DNA of 64,000 bases from Paraphysomonas bandaiensis (taxonomy: Eukaryota; Protista; Chrysophyceae): the NCBI GenBank assembly GCA_965644295.1, contig CBFFRP010000043.1, positions 30,516 through 94,515 of the forward strand, written 5' to 3'. Shown here piece by piece: positions 7,601-64,000 of this stretch; within the stretch, counting starts at the first letter, position 1, and the number at the start of each line of letters is the position of its first letter. The notes under the pieces are model-generated. The model worked only from the letters and a program-made list of their open reading frames with translations, did not search any database and was not told the DNA's origin. The translations under genes were made by a program, and so were the position numbers.

Positions 7601-10600
7601 TGCACTTATCGTCGAAGGGGTTGCTCTGGAGAACACTGCATGCTTTGTGTCCAATTACACTAGTAACGGCGTTGAATGTACCTGCTCGTTGACTGCTGCT
7701 AACACGCAACGTAGATTGGATATTTCAATAGCTAATGAAGTCGACAAGACAGGATATCTGGAGGTGGCTGCCATTTCAGTGTATATTGCGGACGAGTTTC
7801 TGACAACCATCAAGTCATCGGATGAAATTACGATTGAAAAACTTCAAGGCTCAGTTGCGGTTATATTGATGTTCGTTGTACTGTGGGCATCTGTTCTCTC
7901 TGTTATTGCATTCCTCTCGGTTACTGATATTACTCACCGTCAGAAGGTATACAATGAAAAATCGAAGAAACAAAGTCGGGTATCTCGCACGTCTCGTACC
8001 GCCCGTACCACTGCAACCACAGCTACACCGTCGACACAGGACCCGGCTGCAGTCCACTCCTACCTTACTATGTATATCGATAATATCATACCGGTCATTT
8101 TCCGACCAACAGTTTCCGTATTTAAGAGTTTTTTTGGTGAGATTAGCAATCACCACAGGTATCTCAAGGTTCTTACGTATGATGGTCTCGACGCGGATGA
8201 GGTTCGTTTCAGAGTGGGACTGCAGGTGTGTATGTATATATTATAATAATAAATATTCATATACCAATGCAGTTGCTTACGGTGCAAAGCATGCTAATGT
8301 TTTTCATGGCCCTCTTCTACGAAATAGAGTATCCGAGAGATGATGGTACTTGTGAGACGTACGATACCAAGGACAATTGTCTTGAAGAAACGTCTATTTT
8401 CGACCCTGATGTTTCTCGGTGTAAATGGGTTGTGGATGGAGATGACGACTTAGCACCCGCCAATTGCCAGTACCGAGAAGTTAATATCACATTCCGGGTA
8501 CGTTATATTGTGTTAGAAGTTTCCAAATTTGTTTAATATTTTTATATAGTTGATGTTTATTGTGGTGGTGTTTCTCTCAATCTGTGCTGCCCCTGTAAAC
8601 TTTATGGTGGATTATATCTTTGAGTAAGTATTGCACCTACCCTTCACTTTATTGGTGATTATTGTTGCACAGCAATATCATCGCAGCACCTGTGGCAGAT
8701 GACGTCAAAGTGATGCACGAAACTCCACAGATGGGAAGAAGATTTACCAATGCCTTGATTCGTGGAGTATCGAAGTTGAATGCTCAATTAACGAAGAAGT
8801 CACCACTAGATTATGTGAAGAATTCCGTTTTCCCTAAGCAGTCTCGAAAGGTGCCCAAGGATGTAGTAAACTCTCACAATGTGGCTATGCTAGCTCTGAA
8901 CTTCGCACATGGTAAACGTGACGCTAACAATAATTCAAGTGAGGATGAATTTGCGACAAAGTTGAAACGGGCCATGTCCGTTACATGCAATGATTTTCTT
9001 GATAAACTGTCAGAACAGCACTTTGCTCTAACAGGCGACGCAAGAAATTCCTTCGACAAAACTTGGGGGTAAGCGAATTGAGCACAAAATTGTCAATGTC
9101 TAAAACGTGCTGCCAGCATTGACCCCTCCGGTAACATACCAGACGTAGAATCACGAAGGCTGTTATGTTGTAATCTATCCAGACCTGGAATGCCCGAACT
9201 TATTGACAAAGAAATTAATCATGTTGAGGATATTGCTTTAAAGAAAATTGCGAAGCTGAAATATGCCCCAGAGTAAGGCAGTGCTAATATATTACTGCTT
9301 GGCTGACTTAATTGTTCTGAAGTTTGCATATTGGAATCGAAGTAATACATTTATTTCTGTTGGATTTACTTGGACGCGACACGCCTGAAGGCCGCATATT
9401 CAGCTACAAGATGGACCAAGAGTATGTATAAATATTATTTTTGTCCATCTCAGTTCATATGTCTTTAGCTTTGGTCATAGCTTTCTCGTGTCATATTGGG
9501 CAAAAATTCTGGCGTGGGTATTTGTTGCTTTTTTGAACATCTTCTTCGTTTACTTTTCGATACTGCGTGCTATTGACCGCGACATTCATTGGCAGATGGG
9601 TTATATTACCGCCTGTATATTACGTAAGTCAATTATGCTTTGCATTACATACTTGATGGTTTTTTTAGAAATGGTGATAGAAGTTTTGTTTTTTGAAACC
9701 ACAGAATGTCTTTGGATTAATTGGCAAGGTTGTTTAACGATATACTATATATATGTGATAACATTGTCGCAGCACCTCGTTTGGTCCAGCCAGACGTTGA
9801 GGCAGCTGTTCGTGTCTTGTACAGATCGCTCGACTTCGCGCTTGCCAATACCGACACTAATAATGTTGTGCTTGATGTTCCACAGTTCCTTTTCGTTTCT
9901 ACTAGAGTTGCTGAGGCGTTCCCGCGACTGTTCGAATGTAAACTCATCTTGAAATTCAAAACTTATTTAGGGGGAAAGATAGCAGAGAAAATTAGACAGG
10001 AGTCTATTTTGAGTCACGAGCGGCAGCCTCTGTGGTTAGTTTTGTGTCAATCTTTCCTCCGAATGATATCCGTTTTTTCGGTCGTATCAATATTGAGATT
10101 TGTTGGGACTCTCGACGTTGCCGTTCAACGTGTGGTAATTCATGTGCTCCAGCGTGTTCTTTTCGTCCTAATTGTAATTTTCATCACTGTGATTTCCTAT
10201 TATCCCTGGTTGGGTTTCGTTCCCGCCCTCTTGTTATTGTACCAAATCAAAAGCTGTTTACATCATAGGCGTGTACAAGCGACTGATGATGACGATTTCT
10301 TTTCCCCTATTCCTATTGCCGATACCCCATTTGCGAAATGTCCCAGTCCTTCAGTTGGAGTGGACAATAGTTCCCCAAATCATGGGTCTGTCCAACTCAC
10401 TGACCCAGCAGACAGTGCCATTCTTCCTGGTCGCAGTGAACGTAGTCCCTATGCAACCAGTAACAATAAGTCGAATAGCATCATGTCAGCGCTTGGAGGG
10501 GATAGCATCCTGCTCGGCGACGAGGACGATGAGGCTGAAAAAGTGGATGATTCTGACCCGAAGCTTAATAAAAGTGTCGACCCGTTCATATGGTCGCTTT

Positions 10601-45289: not shown

Positions 45290-45475
45290 TACACTATAGT
45301 GACATTGTGGCCTCTATACACTGTAGTGGTTGTGACCTGTACACTGCAGTGGTTATGATATGTACACTGCAGTGGTTGTGACCTGTACACTGCAGTGGTT
45401 ATGATATGTACACTGCAGTGGTTATGATATGTACACTGCAGTGGTTATGATATGTACACTACAGTGGTTGTGAAC
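45290..45475. repeat. 23-bp minisatellite, ~8 copies
   Basis: Units gtacactgcagtggtt followed by atgatat or gtgacct. Confidence 0.9.
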
Positions 45476-46313: not shown

Positions 46314-47903
46314 TCATATGAATTCACATACTTCATTTGAGTCGAGTCTGAATTGACTGTTACGTTTTTTCCGTACATAACAACAGTGTTTATTGTGTTT
46401 TTTGTGCTGTGATGGTGAGTGTGGTTTTTGAGTGTGGTTAAAACCAAACATGGACATTGGACATCGAGGGTCCTGTGAACGAAGCCAATCCAGAACATCT
46501 AGGTGCCCACCCTGTGCAGCAGCTTTGCAAGAAACAAAACTCCATGGACATGGAGAGTCCTGTGAACGAAGCCACTTCAGAACATCCAAGTGTCCACCTC
46601 TTGCAGCAGCTTCGCAAGTCTTGTTATTCCATGGACATGGAGGGTCCTGTGAACGAAGCCACCTAAGAACATCTAGGTGCCCACCCTCTGCAGCAGCACT
46701 GCAAGAATATTCATTCCATGGACATGGTGGATCCTGTGAACGAAGCCATCTAAGAACATCCAAGTGTCCACCCTGTGCAGCAGCTTTGCAAGAAACAAAA
46801 CTCCATGGACATGGAGAGTCCTGTGAACGAAGCCACTTCAGAACATCCAAGTGTCCACCTTCTGCAGCAACTGCGCAACTCCGTTCATTCCATGCACATG
46901 GAGGGTCCTGTGAACGAAGCCACTTCAGAACATCCAAGTGTCCACCTCTTGCAGCAGCTTCGCAAGTCCTGTTATTCCATGGACATGGAGGGTCCTGTGA
47001 ACGAAGCCATCTAAGAACATCTAGGTGCCCACCCTCTGCAGCAGCAGCACTGCAAGAATATGAATTCCATGGACATGGAGGGTCCTGTGAACGAAGCCAC
47101 TTCAGAACATCCAAGTGTCCACCCTGTGCAGCAGCTTCGCAAGTATATAAACTCCATGGACATGGAGGATCTTGTGAACGAAGCCATCTAAGAACATCCA
47201 AGTGCCCACCCTGTGCAGCAGTATTGCATGTCCAGTGATCCCATGGACATGGAGGGTCCTGTGAACGAAGCCACTTCAGAACATCCAAGTGTCCACCCTC
47301 TGCAGCAGCAGCACTGCAAGAATATGAATTCCATGGACATGGAGGGTCCTGTGAACGAAGCCACTTCAGAACATCCAAGTGTCCACCCTGTGCAGCAGCT
47401 TTGCAAGTATATAAACTCCATGGACATGGAGGATCCTGTGAGCAAAGCCATCTAAGAACATCCAAGTGTCCACCTCTTGCTGAAGCTTTGCAAGTATATA
47501 CATTCCATGGACACGGAGGGTGCTGTGCATGAAGCCACTGATGTGTATTCAATTCAATAGAAGCATGATCTGCATTATGTGTATGTGTATGTGTATATAT
47601 ATGTGTGTGTAAGTATATCATCTGCTGTAGTCTGCCGTATAGTGCACATGTATCCATTAGTTTGAGGTGTGGGCAGCCCATAGCCAGAGCCCATGAGACC
47701 ATGGAGTTGGTCATGCAGTAGTGAGATGCATGTGACTCAAGTCTCTCTCTGCTCTTGTCTCTGCTCTTAACTCTCGTGTTATCAGCCATATCGTGAAGTC
47801 TCTTGCAAGTCATCATCACAGGAAGGAGAGCTTTGTGTGGGATCATAGAGATGATGATACGAATCACGTCATCGTTGAGATCAGATATACTCAACATACC
47901 CAT
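46314..47903 (-). CDS. F-box-like N-terminus plus 12 ankyrin-like 'CPW' repeats (29-30 aa), paralog A
   Basis: LSISDLNDDVIRIIISMIPHKALLPVMMTCKRLH; 87-bp tandem units encoding xxx(T/S)CxxAAxGGHLDVL(K/R)WLRSQDPPCPW. Confidence 0.9.
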   Translation of the reverse strand: MGMLSISDLNDDVIRIIISMIPHKALLPVMMTCKRLHDMADNTRVKSRDKSRERLESHASHYCMTNSMVSWALAMGCPHLKLMDTCALYGRLQQMIYLHTHIYTHTHTHNADHASIELNTHQWLHAQHPPCPWNVYTCKASARGGHLDVLRWLCSQDPPCPWSLYTCKAAAQGGHLDVLKWLRSQDPPCPWNSYSCSAAAAEGGHLDVLKWLRSQDPPCPWDHWTCNTAAQGGHLDVLRWLRSQDPPCPWSLYTCEAAAQGGHLDVLKWLRSQDPPCPWNSYSCSAAAAEGGHLDVLRWLRSQDPPCPWNNRTCEAAARGGHLDVLKWLRSQDPPCAWNERSCAVAAEGGHLDVLKWLRSQDSPCPWSFVSCKAAAQGGHLDVLRWLRSQDPPCPWNEYSCSAAAEGGHLDVLRWLRSQDPPCPWNNKTCEAAARGGHLDVLKWLRSQDSPCPWSFVSCKAAAQGGHLDVLDWLRSQDPRCPMSMFGFNHTQKPHSPSQHKKHNKHCCYVRKKRNSQFRLDSNEVCEFI

Positions 47904-49423
47904 ACTGATGATATGATGAGGTTACGTGAGGCTGATGGAGTGTGTATACATACACAGCAGATGACAGTCAAATGCATGCGACTCGTATCTTGCTGTATAC
48001 ATACATGCACATACACAACTGTATGTGGCAACACAGCAGCTGAAGAGAAGAGCAGGCGCATACTGGGGACACTTGCTGGGGCACAGAATACTGTATATGA
48101 TGGTATACCAGTGGAATACAGTCTTCTCCAGCACAAGAAATCTTCCCACACCCATTCAATAAGACAGTTTTTTCCAATAATCCTGCTGTTTCTAGACTTT
48201 CGGAGTGAAAATGTCCACTTGTTATGTCAACGAGAGGCACTAAAATGACTGTTTTTTGTTGTTTTTGATGGTTTTGTTTGTATTTCGATGTTTTTATTAT
48301 GAAGATTAGGATCACGTTAACACCATACTGCACCCCTCATACCATACTCTGATACCTCCACAACAATAACATCTAGACATGAGATCATTGTAAGTGGATA
48401 TAACAATATGCATATCACATAGCCTGTATTAGGCTTGACAAGGGATGGAAATGGGTGCATAGATCGATTAGGGGATAATCAGAGAGGTGAGCACACTGTA
48501 AGAGGAAGAGGGGCAGCACTCATAAATGGAGAGTTGGGGACTGAAGAACAGCGATGAGAGATATTTTTCCAATATGTAGAGGGGTGAGAGGGCTCTGTGC
48601 AGTGTGTATATTTGGACAGCTCTGACGCCCTCTGTATACATCAGTAAAGAGCAGCACACACACATATGGATGAGAGCATACAGAAGATCAGCCACCAGAT
48701 AACTGTGTATTTATGTATTTGAGAGTCCCCCAAAAGAGTTTTGATGTCATCGGAGACATTATGTCGAGGTATAAGGCTTTGTATAGATGTTGACAACATG
48801 CCTTGCAAAATACGTTCAGGGATGTATGAGGTTGAGTTCGATGTCGACGATGCAGCACCAGTTGCGACGTAGAGGTGGTACGGCAGGGATGACCACCAAC
48901 CGTCGTATACTTATATAGAATAGCTACCAGAGAATAAAATGTAGAGTCCAGTAGTGGTAGTGGGATCATAGCAGGAAGGAGGAATAGCAAGAAGGCACTA
49001 TAAAGGTATGTGTGATGCTTGTATCTATATACCTACCAGTGCTTATGGCCTATCTTTGCTGATTTTTGACATATCTACGAATTTCTGTTGACTACGTACG
49101 TCGAATCAGTGTATATATAATACGTTAATTTAAATTCATAGCTCTCCTGGGATTAGTGTTAATGAATTTACATTAGTCGATCGGACTATAAAGTATATAT
49201 GTAGTAGGTAGTAGGGCGTGTATAGTGCACATGCATACATGCCACAACTAAATTTATCATGTATATAGATACACTGATAGATACTTATTCGTTATTATCT
49301 ATCCCGAAATCATCCCACAGTCAAGGCTACTAGAATGCGTTTTTCAGAAACATTATTTTGCTAAGATTTCAACCTGACATCGAAAGCTGATTCTTGATAT
49401 ATGGCTCTTTAAGCTATTCGAAG

Positions 49424-50672
49424 CAGGGCTGGAAACCATTAATGGTAGTGGCATTAATGGCCATTAATGGTAATGCCATTATAATTGCCGGGACTTTTTT
49501 CATTAATGCCATTATAATTGCGGGAAACTGGACTACCATTAATGGGCCATTAATGGTATCCCATTAACAATGACCTGTACTGCTATATATAGAACTGAGT
49601 GTTATTAAGATAATATAGAATATAGTATCTCCTCTATGCTCCGAAGAAACTCTAAACAATATTCATGCAACTCTACAGGCACTCTGTGGCAACTCTGTTC
49701 ACTATCTTCTTAATGCATTCCACAGGTAGAGAATAGTGTCCTGACGATATCCATGCATAGCAACGTACCCATATACCCAAAAACTCTAAAATAACCATTG
49801 AAAATATGCATATTTCACCTAAAAACATTAATTAAAACACTATTTTCCCCCAAAGTTGAAAGAAGCTACAGCAGTACACAACTAAGCGAAGTAATATACT
49901 CTGTATTTATACCATATATATACAATATACAATATACACAGCATATTAAGCAACGATGATGGCCGAAAAAATTGATGGCAGTGTAATTTACAGAGTCTTC
50001 TTCCGAGTGGATTCAGAGAATCCTCTGTATCATATTTGTTCTTTGTGCAATAACCGCCTTAAATTCAAGGGAACGATGAAAGAGAGTTGACAGGCAATGA
50101 GAGAAAAGAGCAGTTAGACATTTGCAACTGGATTCGTCCATGGAGGTTGGTGTACCCGACAGAAATAACGAGGACGAGAGTGAAGGAACTGATTTTGTTC
50201 TAGACAGCGTCGAGGTCACCAAGAGAGCCTGACTTGGTCCAACTACCGCTGCTTGCTTCATATTGAAGCACAATCTAATGTTGTTGAGAGGCTCTTTAGT
50301 CGTGCAAAGTTGATTATGACACCTGAGCGTAGAAACATGAATCCATATCGTCTAGAATTGTTGTCATTCCCACGAGCCAATTACATGTTGTGGGATGTAT
50401 ATACCCTCCATGAAGCCCTGCAAGAAGATCCTGATGTGCCAGTAGAGAGCGAGAAGTAGTAGTTAAAATTGTAGTCTGCTATTTAACTAAAAATTAGTAA
50501 TTAAGAGAGCACAACACTATCTATTATATGAGTGGTGTCATCTACTTTAAGTTAGTAGGTATTAATGGCCATTAATGGCCATTATAATTTCCGGGACATT
50601 TTTCATTAATGCCATTATAATTGCCGGGAACTGGACTACCATTAATGGGCCATTAATGGTTACCAGGCCCTG
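49424..50672 (+). mobile_element. Non-autonomous hAT DNA transposon (second family)
   Basis: TIRs cagggctggaaaccattaatgg ... ccattaatggttaccaggccctg; 8-bp TSD ATTCGAAG at 49416-49423 and 50673-50680; palindromic ccattaatgg subterminal repeats. Confidence 0.93.
50253..50459 (+). pseudogene. hAT transposase dimerisation-domain remnant
   Basis: SNVVERLFSRAKLIMTPERRNMNPYRLELLSFPRAN..LW. Confidence 0.85.
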
Positions 50673-51117
50673 ATTCGAAGTATATCAGATACTCATCGTG
50701 AGCTCAATACTCATGAGATAATATCCTATGTTGATACAGAAACAAGGAATTAAATTGATAATGCAGTTATTTTTGAAACTGTCACCGTTGAAACTCAAAC
50801 TCTACTTATGTCATGGCATTGGGCATTGTCTCACATCTAACTTAAATATCAACAAAGCATTCACCGGCCAAATATCCATCACTATTATGATAGCCATATA
50901 CGAAAAGATTCCAATTTCGTATTTCGCATTTCCCTGTATGTAATACACTCGATGTGGATTTTAAAAATGCTCTCTTTATCCATATACAAAAAAATCATGA
51001 GATTGTTATTATTTCATGTCTGATTAGATACCTCCTAAAAACTAGGCCATAATGCCTACTATGTGTAAAGGTATTTCCAAAAACACAAATGTCCATACTA
51101 AACAGCAGAGAAGCATA

Positions 51118-52926
51118 TCATTTCAAAACATGGACATTGGACATTGAACATGGAGGGTCCTGTGAATGAAGCCACCTCAGCACATCAAGGTGCCGACGCT
51201 GTGCAGCAGCTCTGAAAGTCCGCCCATCCCATGGACATGGAGGGTCCTGTGAACGAAGCCATTTCAGTACCTTCAAGTGACCACCCTCTGCAGCAAATTT
51301 GCAGGTATATTCATTCCACGGACATGGAGGGTCCTGTGAACGAAGCCATTGAAGAACATCCAAGTTTCCACTTCTTGCAGCAAATTCGCAGGTCTCTTCA
51401 TCCCATGGACATGGAGGGTCCTGTGAACGAAGCCATCTCAGTATATCCCAGTGCCCACGTCTTGCAGCAGCACTGCAAGAATATTCATTCCATGGACATG
51501 GAGGATCCTGTGAACGAAGCCATCTCAGTATATCCCAGTGCCCACGTCTTGCAGCAGCACTGCAAGAATATTCATTCCAGGGACATGGAGGATCCTGTGA
51601 ACGAAGCCACTGCAGAACATCCAAGTGCCCACGTCTTGCAGCAGCACTGCAAGAATATTTATTCCATGGACATTGAGGGTCTTGTGAACGAAGCCACTGC
51701 AGAACATCCAAGTGCCCACCTCTTGCAGCAGTTTCGCAAGTAACACAACTCCATGAACATGGAGGTTCCTGTAAACGAAGCCATCGAAGAACATCCAAGT
51801 GCCCACCTCTTGCAGCAGTACTGCAAGTCCGGTCATTCCAAGGACATGGAGGGTCCTGTGAACGAAGCCATCTAAGAACATCCAGGTGCCCACCTCTTGC
51901 AGCAGTACTGCAAGTCCGGTCATTCCAAGGACATGGAGGGTCCAGTGAACGAAGCCACTTCAGAACATCCAAGTGTCCACCCATTGCAGCAACTTCACAA
52001 CTATATACATTCCACGGACATGGAGGGTCCTGTAAACGAAGCCATCGAAGCACATCCAAGTGTCCACCCTCTGCAGCAGCACTGCAAGAATATTCATTCC
52101 ATGGACATGGAGGGTCCTGTGAACGAAGCCATCTAAGAACATCCAAGTGTCCACCTTTTGCAGCAGCACTGCAAGAATAATCATTCCATGGACATGGAGG
52201 GTCCTGTGAACGAAGCCATCGAAGAATATCCAAGTGTCCACCCATTGCAGCGTATTTGCAAGTATATAAACTCCATGAACATGGAGGGTCCTGTGAACGA
52301 AGCCATCTAAGAACATCCAAGTGTCCACCCTGTGCAGCAGTACTACAAGTCTCTTCATCCCATGGACATGGAGGGTCCTGTGAACGAAGCCACTTCAGAA
52401 CATCCAAGTGCCCACCCTCTGCAGCAGTACTACAAGTCTCTTCATCCCATGGACATGGTGGATCCTGTGAGCAAAGCCATCTAAGAACATCCAAGTGTCC
52501 ACCTCTTGCTGCAGCTTTGCAAGTATATACATTCCATGGACATGGAGGGTCCTGTGCATGAAGCCACTGATGTGTATCCAATTCAATAGAAGCATGATCT
52601 GCATTATGTGTATGTGTATATATATGTGTGTGTAAGTATTTCATCTGCTGTAGTCTGCCGTATAGTGCACATGTATTCATTAGTTTGAGGTGAGGGCAGC
52701 CCATAGACAGAGCCCATGAGACCATGGAGTTGGTCATGCAGTAGTGAGATGCATGTGACTCAAGTCTCTCTCTGCTCTTGTCTCTGCTCTTAACTCTCGT
52801 GTTATCAGCCATGTCGTGAAGTCTCTTGCAAGTCATCATCACAGGAAGGAGAGCTGTGTGTGGGATCATAGAGATGATGATACGAATCACGTCATCGTTG
52901 AGATCAGATATACTCAACATACCCAT
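51118..52926 (-). CDS. F-box-like N-terminus plus 16 ankyrin-like 'CPW' repeats (29 aa), paralog B
   Basis: N-terminal ~130 aa nearly identical to paralog A; 16 tandem 87-bp units. Confidence 0.9.
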   Translation of the reverse strand: MGMLSISDLNDDVIRIIISMIPHTALLPVMMTCKRLHDMADNTRVKSRDKSRERLESHASHYCMTNSMVSWALSMGCPHLKLMNTCALYGRLQQMKYLHTHIYTHTHNADHASIELDTHQWLHAQDPPCPWNVYTCKAAARGGHLDVLRWLCSQDPPCPWDEETCSTAAEGGHLDVLKWLRSQDPPCPWDEETCSTAAQGGHLDVLRWLRSQDPPCSWSLYTCKYAAMGGHLDILRWLRSQDPPCPWNDYSCSAAAKGGHLDVLRWLRSQDPPCPWNEYSCSAAAEGGHLDVLRWLRLQDPPCPWNVYSCEVAAMGGHLDVLKWLRSLDPPCPWNDRTCSTAARGGHLDVLRWLRSQDPPCPWNDRTCSTAARGGHLDVLRWLRLQEPPCSWSCVTCETAARGGHLDVLQWLRSQDPQCPWNKYSCSAAARRGHLDVLQWLRSQDPPCPWNEYSCSAAARRGHWDILRWLRSQDPPCPWNEYSCSAAARRGHWDILRWLRSQDPPCPWDEETCEFAARSGNLDVLQWLRSQDPPCPWNEYTCKFAAEGGHLKVLKWLRSQDPPCPWDGRTFRAAAQRRHLDVLRWLHSQDPPCSMSNVHVLK

Positions 52927-55900
52927 ACTGATGATATGATGAGGTTACGTGAGGCTGATGGAGTGTGTATACATACACAGCAGATGACAGTCAGATGCAT
53001 GCGACTCTTATCTGCCAGGGTGCGAAGTACTGGGGACAGCACATGTACAGAGTGTGTGAAGCATCAGTTTTTGGGATTATAGAAACTACTCTGTGAAAAA
53101 GAAAATCGCCACTTTTCTATGCAATACAGAGTAGATGCCTTGTTCGAAAAATACATTTTTTTGGGAAAGATGCCACTTTTGTAGTTGTAAAAATACCGTT
53201 TTGTTGGAGCCCGCACTCACTGTACGTACGAGTACAATCTACAATCGTAAGCAGCGGCCGCACAGCAGGTGCGCCCATGGAGTGATCCAATTGGTTGCTT
53301 TGATTTTAGTATGATTGGCTGTGCAGATATGACACGACAGCCATATGCGTCCCCAGCACATACACATTGAGAGCTTCAATGCCAGGTGAGAACATGCTCC
53401 TATCATCTTGTTTCATGAACTGTGAGATATTCAGTTACTGGACGAGGTTCACTGTATAAGGCTGTATATAGAGTAACGGTAAAGGGCTGTATATTATGGT
53501 ATGATATGGATAGAGTGGTGTACGGTATGGTGCTGTATGATGTTGTGGGATGATATATGCATGATTTATACTATCGATATACAAGATGCTGCACGATGCT
53601 GTGGATTAATAATATATGTCACTGTTGGGGCCTCACTTTGCCTGGATTCATTTGATAGGCTAGATGCCTAATGCAGGAATGTCATACACTGGAGCGATAC
53701 TTATGACGGACAACTATATGCAGTAAACATACATGAATGAATATTTGAATGCCAGGAAATTGCATGCTCCCATCATCTTTTTTAAAGTGTCAGAAATGTA
53801 GACAGATGACCAGTGGTGCGGGTGAAGGAATAGAATGCTGTATATCATGATATGATATGTACTGGATGACATACACTATGATGGATGTACTATGTTATTT
53901 GATGGTATATGATTTGATTGCACATGGTATGAGATGCTGAACGCTGTGATGGTTTATACTTCCCAGTGCAAGAGGGATGCCACAAGCGCCCGCTTGCCGC
54001 TGTTCCTTCTTGTGTGTTGATTATATATAATGCTATATTGTATGATATGTTTAATTCATTTGAAGTGAAGATGTACCATGTTGTGTAATGATATACAGTA
54101 TGGCTGTATGTGATAAAAAATCTGAAAGGTGTGTAATATAATATAATATTGGTTAATGCTAAGCTGTACGAAAGAAATGGCTGCATGATATGGCTGTATA
54201 TGATATAATACTGAACACTATGGTGGCTAATTATGCTGTTGTACGCTCTGTTAAGCGGGCTTCAGGGTACGGTACCTTCGACATTTTACAGATAGAGTGC
54301 AATATACAGTACAACATACCGCTGTACATATAGCAGAGTATCTCTTCGATCACAGTTGCTACAAAGAGATTCAGAAAGATACGAATATGAGTCATTCCCG
54401 AAAACAAGAGGAAGATCTGTTTCTTCTACACTCTATGCCATGACTCGTCTATAGTCTGGTTGGGTGATGATAGCTGTATATGAACAAACTACCATACTAT
54501 ATATGTACTAGTATATATATCAGATCAGATGATATCATAATGAATACTACTGATACTAATTAATACGTCATATATATTAGTTCCTTGAGATGAACACTAG
54601 AGTGATTTTTTTTTATGAGCATTCTTACGTATTATTAGAGGGTCTTGCAAATGATATTGACTAGTACTTGATATATATGCTATAAAGAATAAGTGTTTCT
54701 ATATATAGCGTATCTTCTCTATTCTCCGAAGTCACTCTAAAAACTGTTCATGCAACTCTACATCTACTTTGTGGCAAAGTTAAAGCTATTAGAGTTGGAA
54801 TATAGTTTCGTGAGCAACAATATACTCGACAATTGAAGTGTCTGCTTCGTGGAGTTTGCAATTATCACTTTTAGTGTTTAATGTACCTCACATTTATACG
54901 CTCTAATAATAGCGATAGTACAACAAATATAACGGCGATAGCAACTTTCATATTATTGTATTATACACACTGCTTACATTTCATATTCTTATTAACATTT
55001 ATTTACATGTTCATTAATAAATCTCTACTACATGCATGGTAATGATATTTGCTCTCGTGTAATGAAAGAGTTCGCTTCCTTTTATTATGCTCATAAGGCA
55101 TCAGGCCGATCCCATGACCTAAAGAAAGCATTGAAAATATACTGATACCAAAAGTCATTGCACGAGTGTTCTTTGAAAAATAAATGCTATTAATGAAGAG
55201 GTTGTAGTATAGACTTGGCAATGCCGGGAGTATTTTGTGTAGGAAAAGGTGTTCTGAAAGACGTCCCTTGGGATTGGTCTCTGCCGGATTTGAGGTAGCG
55301 CAGGGTTCTGAATGAGTAAGTCGAGTGTTCCAAACCTGAAAGAAAAGGGTTGATTAAGACTCCAGCGAGTTGGGCCTGGGGCGAAGGAATAGCCGACGGA
55401 GGCGGAGCCGTGGCTTTTCCGCTGGTGCAACTTCTTAGCTGATTATAACAGAAGTTGACTTTATTTGCTAAGATTTGCTGTTCTCAATTGTATACGATTG
55501 AAAATTATAGCATTACATGATAAAGAACCTAGGTTGTATTCGGTGTGTTCAACACCAATCATTTAAATCATTTACTTTTCTATAATGTACGAACCACACA
55601 CTCAGTAATAGTGTATAGTCACCAACATATACTTCAGTTTCATACTACAATATATAATATACTCTAATTACATATAGATATAACTTTCGATCCTTGCATC
55701 TCACATATAATACAGCACTTTGCAAGCATATATAATCTTCAGATCTCAACAGATTACATTTGTGCAATAAATTCCTATGTAGTTAAGTTTACGTAACAAG
55801 ATCAAACTGTATCTAGCAAGAGGATCACAAATCACTCAAAATTACCTTATCTGTGTTTTAATCTTTCCTGAAGATTGCCTTGCACAGCAAAATCATGTCA

Positions 55901-55978: not shown

Positions 55979-58081
55979 TTACTGAACTGTTCTGAACTTC
56001 TTTAGATGTGCCAGTAGAAGTACTAAACTACTGTTTACTAAAGGTAGAAAATCGCGCCTTGACAGCTCTAACAAAAACTGTGCATTACATATGGGTGCCG
56101 CATGAGATCCTCCGGTAACTGTGCGGAGAAGAGTTTCAATTACAAGTGCTTCGCCCGCCCAGAGAGTATAATCTGCCGCAGAAGCTTCCTTGAAAATTTT
56201 ACGACAAATGCTAATTGCAACGGAAGGTTCAATGTAGGCCATGACCAAGCACTGTAATATTTGTGCTTGAAAGAGTGCGTTCGACAATTGCTTGGATTCC
56301 TTTACTAGTTGAAGCAGAGAGTCACAATCTCTAAGTGCTTCCCTCATACAAGATTCATTTCTACGCTGAGGGACTATACTATTACGAATTCTGAGAGAGA
56401 GACGGGTGTAGAGGATGGGGGTAGACACACTCGAAGCATTCGGATGCGGAACAAGTTGTTCAGAAAGTGATAATAAGCGATTAAGCCGTTCTTCTCGTTC
56501 CACATCAATATCTGTACTCTGCATCCTCAGTTCAGGTAGTAGATAATGCACAGCGGACAGTCTCTCCCCGCCAGTCATCATCTGGGTGTGAATGTCGATT
56601 AGCCGAGTGCATATGTGTACCAGGAGCTCAGTAGACACCATAACCCCACACTGCCTGAGAGCTCGACGACACGCTAACTCTGCCATCGGCAACATCCCCA
56701 ATCTTTCCCAAAATTCCGCTGCCAAGAGACCAACATGTGCTACCGTGTTGGCGTGAGAGAGAACCCAATCTGTATCATTAGACTCCGATGTGCTAGGAGT
56801 AGACTGCTGTTGATTCTGACGGCTGATGTTAGAGTTGGGCTTGTTTCGAAGTTGAGACATATCCAACAGAGCAGAGGACAGAAGAGTCCAGAGGCAATGA
56901 GGGGGCAGACGATCAACACCACTATAGAGTTCTTCCGCATTTCCTTGCTGACCCTTTGAGGGAAAGGTGTAACCAAGAAATGCGCTTACCGGAGGTCGAA
57001 TAGGGCCACGAGCCCGCTTACGAAACAGAAGCAGAGTAGCTTGAACTTCTAGCGCCCGCATATTGAGCTCCGCACAGCGTTGTATACATCGGATGAGGAC
57101 ATTTTCTGATGACACAGTACCATCCCCTTCCTCATGTTCGTCAGGTTGTTGACCTTCAACTACATGGTGTAGCAGTAATAATGCGCGAGCAACAGATGCA
57201 TGGTCTCCAAGTTGGTGAGCCATCTTCATTCCCTCCTCTGTAGCAATAGTCGCTTGAGTATAATACTCTCCGCGCACCCACATATCAGCTAGACTCAACA
57301 TAGCTTGCTGGTATCTCGCCCGCTGTGCGGGCAGGCCCTGCGACAGCGCCTCCATCCCACCACCCTTGGGAGCGAGGGGGTCCACACCGCTGCTGTCAAA
57401 GTAAGAATGAAGGCTCTCTTTAGCCGGGTGGAGGTCATTCTGCAGTACTGCTCGCTCCGCATTCAGGAGATGGCCACGGGGTTCAACTCTTTTTCCAGAA
57501 TGGCAATTCAATATATCTACATAACACGCATCTTCATTCTGGCCTAGCATAAAAGGAAGAGAATCGCATGCCTTCTTTGTCTCAGTAGGACTTAGTTCAT
57601 AATACAAGTCGTCTATGCAACCCTTAAGAAATCGTGCATACACCTCAAAGAGATACGCGATGTCACCAAACGAGAGTTGTCGCCATTTCACTAATTGCGT
57701 CCGAGCATATAGACCGATAAAACTATCTCCTTGAATTATAGATGGAGCACATGCACCATTTGGATCAGATAAATTGGGATTAGCAAAGAAGTGGCCCATA
57801 GAATCCATTATCTGTATCATATCATCAACTGCTTCAATATTTAACTTTGACCGCAAATCCAAAAGAAACACAGACTGGTCTGAAATATATTTCGATATTA
57901 CTGTAAAATATTCATCAGCAGATTGAAAGCGTCGACAGGAACCCATATCGATAACATCAGCAAAGAAGCATAACAGACCGTGTACATCTTTCTTATCACA
58001 ACTAGAGGATGATCTGCCGGCTTGAATCATAGATGCAATGCTGCACACCACAGCAACATCTGATGGTGTTATGGCGACCAT
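55979..58081 (-). CDS. APC5: Anaphase-promoting complex subunit 5
   Basis: ITPSDVAV, SFIGLYAR...LSFGDI, ESLHSYFD, YQQAMLSLA, EEGMKMAHQLGDHASVARAL match the APC5 signature motifs. Confidence 0.8.
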   Translation of the reverse strand: MVAITPSDVAVVCSIASMIQAGRSSSSCDKKDVHGLLCFFADVIDMGSCRRFQSADEYFTVISKYISDQSVFLLDLRSKLNIEAVDDMIQIMDSMGHFFANPNLSDPNGACAPSIIQGDSFIGLYARTQLVKWRQLSFGDIAYLFEVYARFLKGCIDDLYYELSPTETKKACDSLPFMLGQNEDACYVDILNCHSGKRVEPRGHLLNAERAVLQNDLHPAKESLHSYFDSSGVDPLAPKGGGMEALSQGLPAQRARYQQAMLSLADMWVRGEYYTQATIATEEGMKMAHQLGDHASVARALLLLHHVVEGQQPDEHEEGDGTVSSENVLIRCIQRCAELNMRALEVQATLLLFRKRARGPIRPPVSAFLGYTFPSKGQQGNAEELYSGVDRLPPHCLWTLLSSALLDMSQLRNKPNSNISRQNQQQSTPSTSESNDTDWVLSHANTVAHVGLLAAEFWERLGMLPMAELACRRALRQCGVMVSTELLVHICTRLIDIHTQMMTGGERLSAVHYLLPELRMQSTDIDVEREERLNRLLSLSEQLVPHPNASSVSTPILYTRLSLRIRNSIVPQRRNESCMREALRDCDSLLQLVKESKQLSNALFQAQILQCLVMAYIEPSVAISICRKIFKEASAADYTLWAGEALVIETLLRTVTGGSHAAPICNAQFLLELSRRDFLPLVNSSLVLLLAHLKKFRTVQ

Positions 58082-58177
58082 TCCGTATGATGTGAGTAAC
58101 GGAAAAGGAGAGTTTGATGGTGACTTACTCCTCCACTATTCGAATACAAATGCGATTTACACACACAAACGTCTCGG

Positions 58178-59627
58178 CATACATACATACACACATACAT
58201 ACATACATACATACATACATACATACATACATACATACATACATACATACATACATACATACATACATACATACATACATACATACATACATACATACAT
58301 ACATACATACATACATACATACATACATACATACATACATACATACATACATTCATACATACATACATACATACATACATACATACATACATACATACAT
58401 ACATACATACATACATACATACATACATACATACATACATACATACATACATACATACATACATACATACATACATACATACATACATACATACATACAT
58501 ACATACATACATACATACATACATACATACATACATACATACATACATACATACATACATACATACATACATACATACATACATACATACATACATACAT
58601 ACATACATACATACATACATACATACATACATACATACATACATACATACATACATACATACATACATACATACATACATACATACATACATACATACAT
58701 ACATACATACATACATACATACATACATACATACATACATACATACATACATACATACATACATACATACATACATACATACATACATACATACATACAT
58801 ACATACATACATACATACATACATACATACATACATACATACATACATACATACATACATACATACATACATACATACATACATACATACATACATACAT
58901 ACATACATACATACATACATACATACATACATACATACATACATACATACATGCATACATACATACATACATACATACATACATACATACATACATACAT
59001 ACATACATACATACATACATACATACATACATACATACATACATACATACATACATACATACATACATACATACATACATACATACATACATACATACAT
59101 ACATACATACATACATACATACATACATACATACATACATACATACATACATACATACATACATACATACATACATACATACATACATACATACATACAT
59201 ACATACATACATACATACATACATACATACATACATACATACATACATACATACATACATACATACATACATACATACATACATACATACATACATACAT
59301 ACATGCATACATACATACATACATACATACATACATACATACATACATACATACATACATACATACATACATACATACATACATACATACATACATACAT
59401 ACATACATACATACATACATACATACATACATACATTCATACATACATACATACATACATACATACATACATACATACATACATACATACATACATACAT
59501 ACATACATACATACATACATACATACATACATACATACATACATACATACATACATACATACATACATACATACATACATACATACATACATACATACAT
59601 ACATACATTCATACATACATACATACA
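58178..59627. repeat. (TACA)n microsatellite, ~1450 bp (~360 units)
   Basis: Nearly pure repeat with a few point variants; source of the spurious HTYI/MYVC ORFs. Confidence 0.99.
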
Positions 59628-60461
59628 GCAGGATATGACATCCAATATCTGGATATAAGTATAGAATGATTGTAGAGAGAACGTAGACTCATATAAACGA
59701 ATTAACTATTGTTTTCAATGATCATCAATATATAATGCAGATGTCAGCGATGGTTCATTTGATTGGATTATATAGAAGATGTGTCATTATTCCAAGTAGT
59801 GTTGAATTATTCAGCTTGTTGTGGACAGCACTGCCAAAAACTTAAAAGCACATCACATGTTCTGGTTTGAAAATGCTGCCACTATGACTTAAAATGCTGC
59901 GAACTCAGTACACACTTTCTATGCTGTACACTTTAATTGCTGTTTTGGATGTTTAGCACGAAAGCTGGATTATAGCTTCTATATATACATGATACGTTTA
60001 TACTATCGATATGAGGTGCATGGTGCATGTATGCTACAGTTAGTATTCCGGTTACGACATCATTGTCTTTTGTGTTTTGTTTTTGGCTACTACTCTTTGA
60101 TACCTCTCATACGCCTCGGTTAAGCAGAAACGTTTCTGTGAAACCACGGAGATGCTGTCCGAGGTTATGGCGTTTTGATTTGGATACACTGCAACCTGAA
60201 GCAGATTTTAAAAGTCCCTGTTTTTGTCCATGTTAGCATGATGAGGTCCCTGGTATGCAATCAAATCGATCAAATTATCATTTTGAGCGAATTGAGCAAA
60301 ACTTGAATGATATAGTATACAGGTGTAATCCTCTATATATTATAGTCTTATAATGAACTTGCTTTTAGTGTGGATATTTCACTATCACATTAACTTTTCA
60401 AGTTTCACATCAAATAAGATTTAAGGTTAGTCTTGATATTTAGTAAGAATATACTTGATAT

Positions 60462-60832: not shown

Positions 60833-63800
60833 CTAAGTCATCCATCGTGGTCTCTTGGTTGAGTTCTCTGCCGGTGGGATAGATACTTTTGTTCTTTTAT
60901 TGCTAGCAGGTATGTTGATACCTCCCCCCTCCATTAGTGAATCCCGCAATCTGTGGAACGTGTTTGATGTGAGGGGTTTAGTTAGAATGTCGGCCAGCAT
61001 CTGGTTTGTAGGCATGTAATCAACAATAATAGAGTGCGATGCGACTTGTTCTCTTATAAAGTGATATCTGATGGCAATATGTTTTGTTCGTCGGTGGTGT
61101 ACGGGGTTTAGGCATAGTTGAATTGCACCTTTGTTGTCACACCATATGGTTGTTGAGTATGGCATGTGGAAGCCCAATTCCGAGAGTAGTGACCGTAGCC
61201 AAATAGCTTCTTGACATGCTGTTGATAGTGCCATGTACTCCGCTTCTGTAGAGGATAGAGCTACAGTTGTCTGGAGTCGTGATTGCCAGGAAATGAGACA
61301 ATTTCCGATAAAGAAGCAAAACGCTGTAGTCGACCTGCGAGTTAAGTTGCAGCGTGCCCAATCACTGTCAGCGAATCCAGTTAAGGTAACAGACTTCCCG
61401 GAGTACTGTAGACCTTGATCGATAGTGCCTTTGAGGTACCTAAGTATGTTTAATGCGGCTTTGCATGTAGTTAGATTTGGATTAGTACTGAAACGAGCAA
61501 GGGTGTTTACAGCATATGCAATATCAGGTCTGGTGCACACAGCAATGTACATAAGTGAACCTATGAGCTCCTTGTAAGGAAAATTTTGGACAAATTCTTG
61601 ATTTTCTTGGGATAGTTGTTTCTTTTCGAGAATGTCTATATGAAAATTTGTTGTCATGGGGTGACTACGTGGCTTGCAATTTTCCATGTTGAATCTGTGG
61701 AGTAGGTTCCGTATGTATTGAGATTGATTTAGTGTCGTAGTTCGATTCTGTATATCCTGTTTGACGAATATGCCGAGGTAGTAATCTAGGAGGCCGAGAT
61801 CATGAATGTCGAATTTTTCAGCTAACGAATTCTTGATTTGGATGATGTCAGTCCTACTTTTACCGGCGATAATGATGTCATCGACGTAAACTGCCAGAAT
61901 TATGGGTCGACCGTTGATTGACTTCGTGAATATGCACGGGTCGGACACTAATCTGGTAAAACCACAGTCTAACAAATAATTAGTACAGCATTTATACCAA
62001 TTTAACCCGGACTGTTTGAGTCCGTATATACTCTTTAGAAGTCTGAGGACTTTACCGTTTGGAACATTGAGACCAGCGGGTGGATACATGTAAATTTCCT
62101 CTTGGAGGTCTGCATTGATGTAAGCAGTGGAGAAATCTACCTGGTGAAGCTCCAACCCAAGTATAGTTGCTAGTGCTATGACTGTTCTCATTGATGTGGC
62201 CTTTGCGACTGGGCTGTAGGTTTCGTTGTAGTCTTTACCCTCGACCTGGGAGAAACCTTGAGCCACTAACCTCGCCTTGAAGGTAACCTCATCTCGCTTG
62301 ACCTTTACCCTAAACACGAATTTTCCCCTTATGATGTTGGAATTTGCTGGTGGTGTCGTTATCCTCCAACAGCCTTTGCTCTCTAGAGACTTGATTTCTT
62401 TGTTGATGGCTTTCAGCCATTGTTCCTTGTACCTGCCTGATAGTGCCTCGCCAACATTGTTAGGTGTGTTAGGTACATCATTGCTACATGTGTCATTTGC
62501 ATGCATAATGATGTCAACATCATTCATGTATAATGTTCTGTAACTATCATGTTTATCAGGTGTTTTGTGGTTGTACAAATATCTTTTATCAACATCACAG
62601 TGGTATATATTGTCACCAAATTTGTGTACATTCATGATTACCCTTTTTCTGGTCTGCCTCTTGCTGTGGAGACTTTTCTTTACGCAACGGCTCACCTTGT
62701 GACGGTGGGGTGTCCTTACACCCGTAATTGTGCCATCCGGGCTTTGCCGGCTCCTGTCACCCTGGGAATTCACAGTCTTGATAGCTCGTTTGACCTTACG
62801 AGCAGGGTAATCACACTTGTTGTCACCCCGTGCCTCCTTCGGCACTGTATTCCGCTGAGCTTCTGCTGTGCGGCGAGGCCTTGCCTCCATTTCATTTGAG
62901 TAGGGTCCTCTCAAATGGCTGTGACTCCCGCCCCGTCGTGTGGCGTCATGACGGCTATCGGTTGAACTACTCCTCCCTGGAGCTATTCCTTCCACGGGGC
63001 ATCCTGGTTCCTCTTGCGGGGGTGATACCGCGTTCTGATAACTAAAGTGCTCGGTGTATCTTTCGATGTCCGCAGCGTGTATTGGATCATTTAACTCGAT
63101 GACCCGCCCTTCATTTTCTCGTGGGGCCAATCCTCTGTAAGCAGCCACGTGGCCTTTGATGACTGTGATTCTTGTCGTGATGTATTGGAGGCCATCCTGT
63201 GGATCTGTGTGGGTCATTCCAACGAGGTATTGGAAGCTCTCGGCTGTTCGATTCTCTGAATTTTCTTCTCTCAGTGATGATTCGATTTCAGCGTAATAGT
63301 TTTCTTTGACGTCGGGGATGCACTCATTGAAAAAGACGTGACTTGAGATTACAAAGTCCTTGAGTGAAGGTACATATATGACGTACCCTGGTCCATCCTC
63401 TCGGTATCCCATGAAGTACCCGATATGGCTGTGTGGAGACCAATCGTTTCTTCTCTGAGACTTGTCTATGAATGTATGGCATTTGCAGCCCCAAATCCTG
63501 GCGTAAGATAAATCGGGGGCCTCGTCGTGGATGAACTGATACGGGGATATGAATCCCTTTGCAGTGGCGCATGGCAGGCGATTTTTCATGTGCGTGACGG
63601 TGGACATGGCCTGTTCCCAGAAGTTGGGTGGTAGGCCCGAGTTGCAAATGGATGCAAGCGTTCTTTCCTTGGTCGTGCGCCATGGTCGTTCTTGAATGGG
63701 GTTGTCTTCAGGCGTGTATGGAGCGTTGAAGGTCCAGGTTGATCCTAATTTTCTCAGCAAGTTCAGTACACGATGTGATACTAGCTCACGGCCACCATCA

Positions 63801-64000
63801 GCATGATAGTGTATTAGCCGTTTGCCTTTCGAATGCAGATAATCCACAATTTTCTGAATGCACTCAATGACAAAATCCTCGGTTCTGTGTTTTCCATAGA
63901 ATGTCCAACCTGTATCTTGAAGCTGCATCGGTAGCTCCGAAGACTACGGTGTTTCCTGTGACTATTGCTGGAGGTGAGAATGGTCCAGTAAAATCAACTG
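60833..64000 (-). pseudogene. pol: Copia pol (integrase, RT, RNase H) with one frameshift in the integrase core near 63908
   Basis: DFTGP...TDAASRY in one frame and WTFYGK..ADGGRE..PEDNPIQER in the next; KARLVAQGFSQ, YGLKQS, YVDD, TRPDI, ADSDWA, SSTEAEY, ADILTKPL. Confidence 0.93.

Follow-up and report, generated by a model that had tools for sequence, protein, structure and literature searches.

The window analysed here is a stretch of 64,000 nucleotides of the Paraphysomonas bandaiensis contig CBFFRP010000043.1. It contains two intronless genes on the minus strand, gene 1 (46314..47903; 529 aa) and gene 2 (51118..52926; 602 aa), whose products share the same order from the N- to the C-terminus: an F-box, a basic linker, degenerate capping repeats and an array of 29-aa ankyrin units. 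The F-box covers residues 6-46 of both proteins (47766..47888 and 52789..52911; Pfam PF00646). In gene 1, it is followed by the basic linker, which includes a His/Thr/Tyr-rich stretch, and two degenerate capping ankyrin-like repeats (47505..47765); the equivalent linker and capping repeats of gene 2 lie at 52534..52788. As this region is conserved at the protein level in the family alignment, we consider it coding and free of introns in gene 1. Tandem Repeats Finder detected 87-bp arrays at 46458-47539 (12.4 copies) and 51148-52566 (16.3 copies). Cutting at the C-P-W anchor delimited 12 units in gene 1 (46455..47504; 29 aa each, except for two of 30 aa) and 16 units of 29 aa in gene 2 (51142..52533), leaving C-terminal tails of 46 and 7 aa, respectively.

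The homology between both genes begins 86 nt upstream of their ATGs. These leaders (47904..47989 and 52927..53012, minus strand) are nearly identical, and their last ~25 nt represent a motif conserved before the ATG throughout the F-box ankyrin family. Over the N-terminal 300 nt the genes show 98% identity, and the N-terminus of gene 2 is 96% identical to that of gene 1. The original prediction had described two paralogs with near-identical F-box N-termini, a common 5′ flank of ~80 bp and arrays of 12 and 16 units; both minus-strand reading frames and their 87-bp arrays were recovered, confirming this description as a whole.

The repeats had been called ankyrin-like, and profiles and fold agree with this assignment. 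In the two proteins, Pfam ankyrin profiles were matched with E-values of 1e-32 to 1e-42 overall (Ank_4: 2e-32 and 1e-41), and Ank, Ank_2, Ank_3 and Ank_5 were each above their cut-offs. The period of 29 aa (87 bp) differs from the 33 residues of canonical ankyrin repeats, and the T-P-L-H motif is absent, with T-C-x-x-A-A in its place, where HMMER puts a 4-residue deletion. An AlphaFold2 model of units 1-8 of gene 2 (pLDDT 94.5, pTM 0.87) showed its best structural match to the ankyrin repeats of Espin-1 (TMq 0.68, rmsd 4.9); FEM1B/C, NOMPC and ankyrin-1 reached 0.5-0.58, whereas PPR proteins reached just 0.37-0.40. Profile and modelled fold thereby support a short, 29-residue variant of the ankyrin repeat. 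Helix 1 of the model comprises unit positions 2-10/11 and helix 2 positions 14-21, so that positions 2-3, 6-7 and 10-11 share one helical face.

Analysis of 494 gap-free units from 42 paralogs revealed entropy maxima at unit positions 1, 2, 3, 6, 7, 10 and 11 (2.0-3.75 bits), with all other positions below 1.3 bits except position 18 (1.9 bits). The near-invariant scaffold and the variation at positions 1-3, 6-7 and 10 were thus as anticipated, and position 11 joins the list. Position 11 was picked only after the data had been seen. It had further been suggested that these positions correspond roughly to the face randomised in DARPins. Like the units described here, DARPin repeats vary at only a few surface positions on an otherwise constant consensus scaffold, but they are designed and 33 aa long, in contrast to a natural unit of 29 aa without the T-P-L-H motif. 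The positions randomised in such ankyrin binders were reportedly set out by Binz et al. 2003. Of the variable positions, 10-11 fall on the two residues ahead of G-H that are randomised in DARPins, whereas 1-3 and 6-7 match only approximately because the 4-residue deletion falls there.

Selection was assessed by Nei-Gojobori counting, which does not account for recombination, on short recombining units, and dN/dS at the variable positions amounted to 1.4-1.85 overall compared to ~0.3 in the scaffold. On a minimum-spanning network, the values were 1.5-1.85 and 0.29, respectively, and the bootstrap interval lay above 1 at edge cut-offs of at least 6. Tree-based parsimony counting on 40 genes, with both window genes left out and with positions 1, 2, 3, 6, 7 and 10 named beforehand in the original prediction, resulted in a dN/dS of 1.41 (p = 2e-5) and of 0.38 for the remainder, so the expected excess over 1 also appeared in independent genes; in this analysis, positions 2, 3, 7 and 10 individually did not significantly exceed neutrality. 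Pairwise estimates without a tree gave 1.4-1.66. Synonymous rates were equal at variable and scaffold positions (0.099 vs 0.104), which argues for selection rather than targeted mutation. By these counting methods, the variable helix-1 positions are under diversifying selection, and the scaffold is under purifying selection. This pattern is typical of genes involved in recognition or conflict, yet many algae and giant viruses have repeats of this type.

Comparing the arrays unit by unit, we found only unit 1 to be colinear between the window genes (98% nucleotide identity); every other unit has its best partner elsewhere in the index order or within its own gene. For 68% of units the nearest relative lies in the same gene, compared to 2.8% expected, and lags of one to three units dominate among the nearest units within an array. 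Near-identical units in different genes are confined to physically linked paralogs, and the comparison of nearest relatives gave no sign that the two window genes had exchanged cassettes. The proposed shuffling of arrays by recombination between genes is therefore not borne out. Because most nearest relatives belong to the same array and sharing between genes is limited to linked paralogs, the arrays appear to change mainly by in-register duplication and loss of units rather than by cassette exchange.

The two genes belong to a large family, as had been supposed: the 62.5 Mb genome contains 93 N-terminal matches and ~70 full-length paralogs, nearly all with open frames free of stops, which are spread over more than 50 contigs amid ordinary cellular genes. 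Contigs from a polyA metatranscriptome and from RNA-like runs sit on the gene ends, while the flanking intergenic bins are empty. A contig of the polyA metatranscriptome X18 extends to 47961, within the leader of gene 1, and exact-match contigs from RNA-like runs lie on gene 2 at 51115-51252 and 52524-52668. All of this RNA evidence consists of assembled contigs, and the 5′ part is common to several paralogs. The RNA-library contigs on the genes thus agree with the expected expression, and family members may be expressed; for the two window genes themselves, this is suggested only for gene 2, by its unique 3′ end, which was matched in a run that we can only guess to be RNA.

The assignment of the N-terminus as an F-box is supported by PF00646, which was matched by 38/42 family members at E ≤ 0.01 (best score 25.6 bits). 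Gene 1 scored 22.0 bits as a whole protein and 25.6 bits with the N-terminus alone, and gene 2, at 19.8 bits in the whole-protein scan, fell slightly below the cut-off of 20.5. All 42 members carry Leu-Asn-Asp-Asp in place of the canonical Leu-Pro at the start of F-box helix 1, and with this start and its marginal Pfam scores the F-box of the family is divergent. Three helices are modelled for gene 1 at residues 11-19, 23-32 and 34-41, the F-box portion having low confidence (pLDDT 45-65). Conservation within the family is highest in the N-terminal 95 residues, whose 35 invariant columns argue for a conserved partner. A profile search found no solved-structure relative of this domain; the family profile also retrieves weak metagenomic relatives, which themselves bear Pfam F-box and Ank domains.

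Skp1, the proposed partner, is encoded in the same genome (PF01466 at two loci, 93.6 and 54.6 bits; three exons visible). The predicted complex between the part of Skp1 encoded by exon 3 and the F-box N-terminus reached an ipSAE of 0.35 compared to 0.01 for the best control, in a score range (≤ 0.60) that includes only 5/78 solved complexes plus all 4 mismatches that passed; the mark itself is passed by 51/78 solved complexes and 2/108 mismatched pairs. Contacts agreed between runs by at least 66%, and the partner pLDDT was at least 50. The expectation of a Skp1-compatible F-box thus holds for the presence of a Skp1 gene, while for docking, tested with one Skp1 exon, the model offers weak support.

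As had been stated, the C-P-W-type repeat is common in giant viruses and algae. Green algae, other protists and giant-virus MAGs contain the same 29-aa unit, in some cases together with an F-box or RING domain, so that the F-box/29-aa ankyrin architecture is not peculiar to this genome. Among the giant-virus MAGs, five contigs (GC 25-36%) carry genes for arrays of this unit with 41-63% identity over 240 aa; these arrays are joined to a RING at the C-terminus (L053, L054) or to a weak F-box (L057). Public proteins include a “putative ankyrin repeat protein” of Chloropicon primus and C. roscoffensis and an “F-box domain-containing protein” of Raphidocelis subcapitata, as well as proteins of Balamuthia, Tribonema and Seminavis. 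The W-L-R-S-Q-D-P-P-C-P-W scaffold and its spacing are equal in the giant-virus MAG, Chloropicon and Raphidocelis proteins, and 615 units from 103 unrelated public proteins vary at the same positions, which makes the pattern a property of the repeat type. In these algal and protist proteins, some of which have an N-terminal F-box or F-box-like domain, unit length, scaffold and variable positions are the same as here; our literature search found no selection or functional analysis of them. For the N-terminal 95 residues of the family, in contrast, a search of 1.84 billion representatives gave only a single strong relative, a fragment of 133 aa, and the viral collection gave none; a profile comparison with the viral N-termini was not significant.

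The concept of expanded, positively selected F-box and MATH-BTB adapter families in nematodes and plants is said to go back to Thomas 2006. Those F-box families resemble the one described here in their lineage-specific size, a conserved docking domain and a substrate domain under diversifying selection, and the targeting of pathogen proteins has likewise been proposed (Thomas 2006 is cited in PMC4063957 and PMC8665587). Unlike these adapters, which use FTH/FBA, LRR, Kelch or MATH domains, the family of this marine protist uses a short ankyrin tandem array and also gains diversity from the number of units. Fungal NOD-like receptors contain highly internally conserved ANK, TPR or WD repeats (Dyrka et al. 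2014, PMC4986451), with a similarly near-identical scaffold, few positively selected hypervariable positions on the inner helix/loop face and changes in repeat number via recombination within arrays. They differ in their NACHT/NB-ARC domains, of which no Pfam match was found in either window protein, and in units of 33-34 aa, whereas here an F-box is the effector and units have 29 aa. The units of gene 1 have a mean pairwise amino acid identity of 0.77 and those of gene 2 of 0.72, below the >85% over ≥100 aa that defines the fungal class; a few paralogs reach 0.84-0.92. Ankyrin arrays are also joined to ubiquitin-ligase modules in giant viruses, in Legionella AnkB (PMC5506055) and in poxviruses, where the F-box-like/PRANC domain is C-terminal (Sonnberg et al. 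2008, as cited in PMC5871332) and not N-terminal as here. Those proteins are pathogen effectors that hijack host ligases, whereas the genes studied here are dispersed in a cellular genome and carry an N-terminal module absent from the viral collection.

In our view, these genes probably represent a lineage-expanded family of SCF-type substrate receptors, in which a Skp1-docking F-box is combined with a diversified ankyrin solenoid for target binding. The N-terminal F-box would dock on Skp1 and the C-terminal solenoid would bind the target. The almost invariant helix 2 and proline/cysteine/tryptophan loop would keep the fold in every unit, whereas positions 1-3, 6-7 and 10-11 would line up as a stripe along the exposed side of helix 1 and its N-cap that carries the variability under diversifying selection. 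New specificities could arise by point substitution at these positions and by in-register duplication and loss of units, followed by duplication of whole genes, either side by side or into dispersed parts of the genome.

A degenerate F-box-like fold without Skp1 recruitment, with the arrays acting outside SCF ligases as scaffolds, inhibitors or decoys, would fit the Leu-Asn start, the marginal Pfam scores, the lack of a solved-structure relative in the profile search and the weak complex score. We give this reading little credence, since no other part of the family is as conserved as the N-terminal 95 residues with their 35 invariant columns, the predicted complex scores 0.34 above every control, at 0.35, and the distant profile matches carry bona fide Pfam F-box domains. 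Only slightly less improbable is a giant-virus origin, in which the genes would be endogenised or domesticated viral ankyrin effectors whose variability was inherited from viral “accordion” expansion instead of reflecting a host recognition repertoire. Such an origin could draw on the five MAG contigs with the same unit and on the documented expansions of ankyrin genes in giant viruses (PMC5871332). However, the copies lie amid cellular genes on more than 50 contigs, their frames are open and their scaffold is under purifying selection. The gene-bearing 2-kb bins have a GC content of 0.47 and 0.43-0.44, near the usual 0.35-0.47 of the window and far higher than the 0.25-0.36 of the viral contigs. 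Moreover, the N-terminal module has no viral counterpart in the collection searched, and green algae and other protists commonly carry this 29-aa unit in their cellular genomes, so that transfer between virus and host could have gone either way.

It is also conceivable, though rather unlikely, that no adaptive diversification took place: the helix 1 surface would then be unconstrained, concerted evolution and folding constraints would keep the scaffold uniform, and the proteins would serve ordinary endogenous regulation. The recurrence of the same variable positions in unrelated public proteins and the lack of significance at four single positions would agree with this, whereas the pooled dN/dS exceeded 1 in three counting schemes, one of them with prenamed positions and unseen genes, and synonymous rates were equal in both position classes. 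Nei-Gojobori counting is conservative where transitions are favoured. Counting methods can be inflated by recombination (PMC4986451), which would agree with a lack of adaptive diversification.

Returning to the receptor family that we favour, recognition of rapidly changing partners would most likely be its biological setting. These partners could be viral, parasitic or selfish-element proteins, which would be ubiquitinated once recognised; an anti-viral or anti-parasite role is pure conjecture. The most far-reaching version, which we regard as unlikely, is that the protist keeps a germline set of more than 70 F-box receptors, with 29-aa ankyrin arrays under selection for capturing viral or other parasite proteins for ubiquitination, while giant viruses turn the same scaffold, with RING or F-box, on host proteins. 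This would amount to an antibody-like innate immune repertoire coupled to ubiquitin in a single-celled eukaryote, with its scaffold swapped horizontally between host and virus.

In nematodes and plants, fast-evolving F-box families are regarded as immune-like receptors, a part that hypervariable repeat arrays take in fungal NLRs; to our knowledge, marine protists have so far provided no characterised counterpart. The family offers a compact natural binder scaffold whose 29-aa unit varies at seven positions, a visible connection to giant-virus proteins made of the same unit, and the prediction that targets would be bound on the helix-1 face and then passed to the SCF. If this role is confirmed, host-virus arms races in the plankton would become testable for each receptor-target pair; if not, the family would still be a well-defined case of repeat-array diversification.

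Both window genes are intronless open reading frames on the minus strand, encoding 529 aa (gene 1, 46314-47903) and 602 aa (gene 2, 51118-52926). Their proteins show the same order of parts: an F-box (residues 6-46), a basic linker, two degenerate capping repeats, the array and a short tail. Splitting the proteins after the C-P-W anchor yielded 12 units of 29 aa in gene 1, two of which have 30 aa, and 16 in gene 2. Tandem Repeats Finder placed the underlying 87-bp arrays at 46458-47539 and 51148-52566 and detected a higher-order period of three units (264 bp) in gene 1. Over their first 300 nt the two genes share 98% identity, and their similarity starts exactly 86 nt upstream of each start codon, in line with the original prediction of two paralogs with near-identical N-termini and differing arrays. 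The capping repeats of both genes contain a His/Thr/Tyr-rich stretch encoded by microsatellite-like DNA. An intron in this (CA/TA)-rich stretch, which codes for His-Thr-His-Ile-Tyr, was ruled out: since paralogs conserve the stretch at the protein level, it is coding, and it corresponds to a degenerate repeat. Directly upstream of the ATG lies a ~25-nt motif (consensus roughly ACACTCTATCAGCCTCATATAAAC; 47904-47930 and 52927-52953). The motif is conserved throughout the family, at the same place in 40 paralogs (among loci L001-L047 of the same genome) and even with otherwise unrelated flanks, making it a candidate for a leader or core-promoter element common to these genes.

The window derives from contig 43 of a eukaryotic assembly of 62.5 Mb in 669 contigs, and the sequencing runs containing this stretch are marine. 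The N-terminal 120 aa matched 93 genomic places, nearly all in open frames of 260-2280 aa; about 70 span the entire N-terminus and eight copies are clustered on one contig. The two genes are thus members of a large family, as had been proposed, rather than an isolated pair. A three-unit query gave 794 first-look candidates in the genome. The family analyses rest on 42 extracted genes of the ~70 full-length ones, with 1-50 units per gene; their N-terminal 95 residues, with 35 invariant columns, are the best-conserved part of the family. The longest array seen belongs to a paralog on contig 218 (L032, 1562 aa, ~50 units).

The proposed F-box was recovered at the N-terminus, as Pfam PF00646 matched 38/42 family members (best 25.6 bits, cut-off 20.5), with gene 2 at 19.8 bits vs 20.5 in the whole-protein scan. 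The domain is divergent, showing an invariant Leu-Asn where the canonical Leu-Pro is expected. A profile of the N-terminus found no match among solved structures at E <= 10, and in a first structure model (residues 1-250) the F-box part was too poor for fold comparison. The Skp1 gene of the same genome (locus L051, 1489-2175, contig 421) has at least three exons with short introns, whereas the F-box/ankyrin genes are intronless. For docking we used a single Skp1 exon of 83 aa, comprising its C-terminal helices. The docking mark was calibrated on 78 solved complexes, of which 51 passed, and on 108 mismatched pairs, of which 2 passed. The complex of the F-box N-terminus with this exon was graded as “weak support” at a score of 0.35 (best control 0.01); scores of <=0.60 comprised only 5 of the 78 solved complexes plus all 4 passing mismatches. 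Contact agreement between runs was at least 66% and the partner pLDDT at least 50. The predicted compatibility with Skp1 is weakly supported by this score for one exon, and the F-box of the family may bind Skp1.

Regarding the repeat itself, both window proteins matched ankyrin profiles with E-values from 1e-32 to 1e-42. An AlphaFold2 model of eight gene 2 units, computed with 32 paralogous arrays as input, reached a pLDDT of 94.5 and a pTM of 0.87 and placed helix 1 at unit positions 2-10/11 and helix 2 at 14-21. Its top structural match was the ankyrin domain of Espin-1 (TMq 0.68, rmsd 4.9), followed by FEM1B/C, NOMPC and ankyrin-1 (0.5-0.58), whereas pentatricopeptide proteins reached only 0.37-0.40. 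The unit comprises 29 residues vs 33, with T-C-x-x-A-A in place of T-P-L-H and a four-residue deletion there. Based on these profile and structural matches, the repeat is a genuine though short ankyrin.

Entropy, computed over 494 gap-free units of 42 genes, reached 2.0-3.75 bits at unit positions 1, 2, 3, 6, 7, 10 and 11, compared to 1.9 bits at position 18 and less than 1.3 at all remaining positions. Variation thus peaks where the original prediction had placed it (1-3, 6-7 and 10), and additionally at position 11. Nei-Gojobori counts along a minimum-spanning network of 456 distinct units gave a pN/pS of 1.70 for the seven variable positions (of which position 11 joined the set only after the data were seen) vs 0.29 for the scaffold, with bootstrap intervals above 1 at edge cut-offs of 6 nt and above. 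A tree with parsimony counts, based on 40 genes without the two window genes and restricted to the previously named positions, yielded 1.41 (p = 2e-5) compared to 0.38 for the rest, with positions 1, 6 and 11 individually significant. Tree-free pairwise estimates at the variable positions ranged from 1.4 to 1.66. All three schemes, which are counting methods applied to short recombining units, agree in placing the variable positions above 1. The synonymous rates in the network counts were the same (0.099 at variable positions vs 0.104 in the scaffold), which argues for selection over targeted mutation.

Positions 2-3, 6-7 and 10-11 lie one helical turn apart and in the model thus line up as a stripe along a single face of helix 1, with position 1 as N-cap. 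Positions 10-11 correspond by alignment to the residue pair preceding G-H, which is randomised in designed ankyrin binders. Positively selected sites of fungal NLR ankyrin repeats likewise fall in this region of inner helix and loop (PMC4986451).

How the arrays change was assessed by comparing individual units. Colinearity between gene 1 and gene 2 is limited to unit 1 (98% nt); each remaining unit has its best partner at a different index, within its own array (99%, 97%, 93%) or on another contig, in a paralog (94-95%). The closest relative of a unit lay within the same array in 68% of cases, most often 1-3 units away, vs 2.8% expected by random assortment, and near-identical units in two genes occurred only among physically linked paralogs. 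Cassette exchange between gene 1 and gene 2 was not supported, since their best inter-gene units reach 85-92%, below the 98% seen in the N-terminus and in unit 1. The earlier description of the arrays as “shuffled” by exchange of units between genes is thus not supported, and the unit relationships point instead to remodelling through duplication and loss of units in register.

Between the two genes, pS was 0.034 in the N-terminus and 0.17 in reciprocal-best units; this contrast would fit a recently homogenised or duplicated 5' module as well as arrays turned over since duplication. Homology of the two loci is confined to the region from -86 through the array, plus a 73-nt patch 1.7 kb upstream. 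An origin by retroposition or small ectopic duplication is possible but unsupported, and transport as mobile-element cargo was rejected because inverted repeats around gene 1 or gene 2 are absent.

Expression was assessed in four runs, all present as assembled contigs. Run X3 is DNA-like (30/30 bins covered), whereas the bins 48000-48199 and 50800-50999 are empty in X18, a polyA metatranscriptome, and in two RNA-like runs, X8 and X14. Contigs of these three runs lie on the 5' part of each gene (47803-47961 and 52524-52922), and one X8 contig matches the 3' end of gene 2 (51115-51252), which is unique in sequence, with zero mismatches. The family is therefore transcribed, with limited attribution to single genes, as the 5' part is common to paralogs.

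The region between the genes contains further elements. A transcribed, unannotated unit at 48361-49117 is covered by polyA metatranscriptome and RNA-like contigs with empty flanking bins, and includes a 100-aa ORF (48688-48990, minus strand). At 49400-50800, summed contig depth in X3 rises to 20,000-50,000 vs ~100 in adjoining bins; with direct repeats inside it (49475-49557 / 50578-50660, 95%) plus an inverted pair of weak similarity (49436-49466 / 50618-50648), this very high-copy element probably represents a non-autonomous transposon of ~1.2 kb. Gene 1 is closely followed downstream by a 23-bp tandem repeat (45317-45473, 6.8 copies, 91% matches). The stretch 58000-60000 (GC 0.29, GC skew -0.61, AT skew +0.25), with long ORFs of 430-543 aa on both strands, probably consists of low-complexity or satellite DNA. 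Other neighbours, namely a 2207-aa ORF with PT repeats and a REJ domain (1623-8246), a CD36-like ORF (13167-16148) and a Copia-type reverse transcriptase (60833-63928), are ordinary cellular or transposon genes and non-viral.

Outside the genome, a word-index protein search with the N-terminus gave zero matches, which is uninformative given the later exhaustive profile matches. Among 1.84 billion representatives, the N-terminal profile found one strong match (a 133-aa fragment) and 17 weak ones; Pfam F-box and ankyrin domains are present in several of the weak matches. The array, by contrast, is by no means unique to this genome, with 2629 public relatives at E < 1e-20 and top hits in Chloropicon primus, C. 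roscoffensis, Raphidocelis (annotated as F-box domain-containing protein), Balamuthia, Tribonema and Seminavis. The inspected Chloropicon, Raphidocelis, Tribonema and metagenome proteins carry the 29-aa unit, while a spacing of 27 residues predominates in those of Balamuthia and Seminavis. The variable positions are the same in 615 units of 103 public relatives.

As the proposed comparison with giant viruses had anticipated, five giant-virus MAG contigs (GC 25-36%) encode the 29-aa unit at 41-63% identity, joined with either a RING at the C-terminus or a weak F-box at the N-terminus. The family N-terminus is missing from the viral collection (zero of 27 pattern matches in viral contigs were confirmed), and its profile gave no significant match to the N-termini of two viral proteins. 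In two of these contigs, L053 (2752-4140) and L054 (2656-4287), the array precedes a C-terminal RING finger, which represents a second coupling of the 29-aa scaffold to ubiquitination.

Our literature searches returned no published description of this repeat class or family, and only generic mentions of ankyrin expansions in phytoplankton. Overall, an expanded family of F-box receptors with a diversifying ankyrin binding face is reasonably supported. It is of a kind known from fast-evolving F-box families and from hypervariable repeat arrays, and differs by its short ankyrin scaffold, which giant viruses also have.
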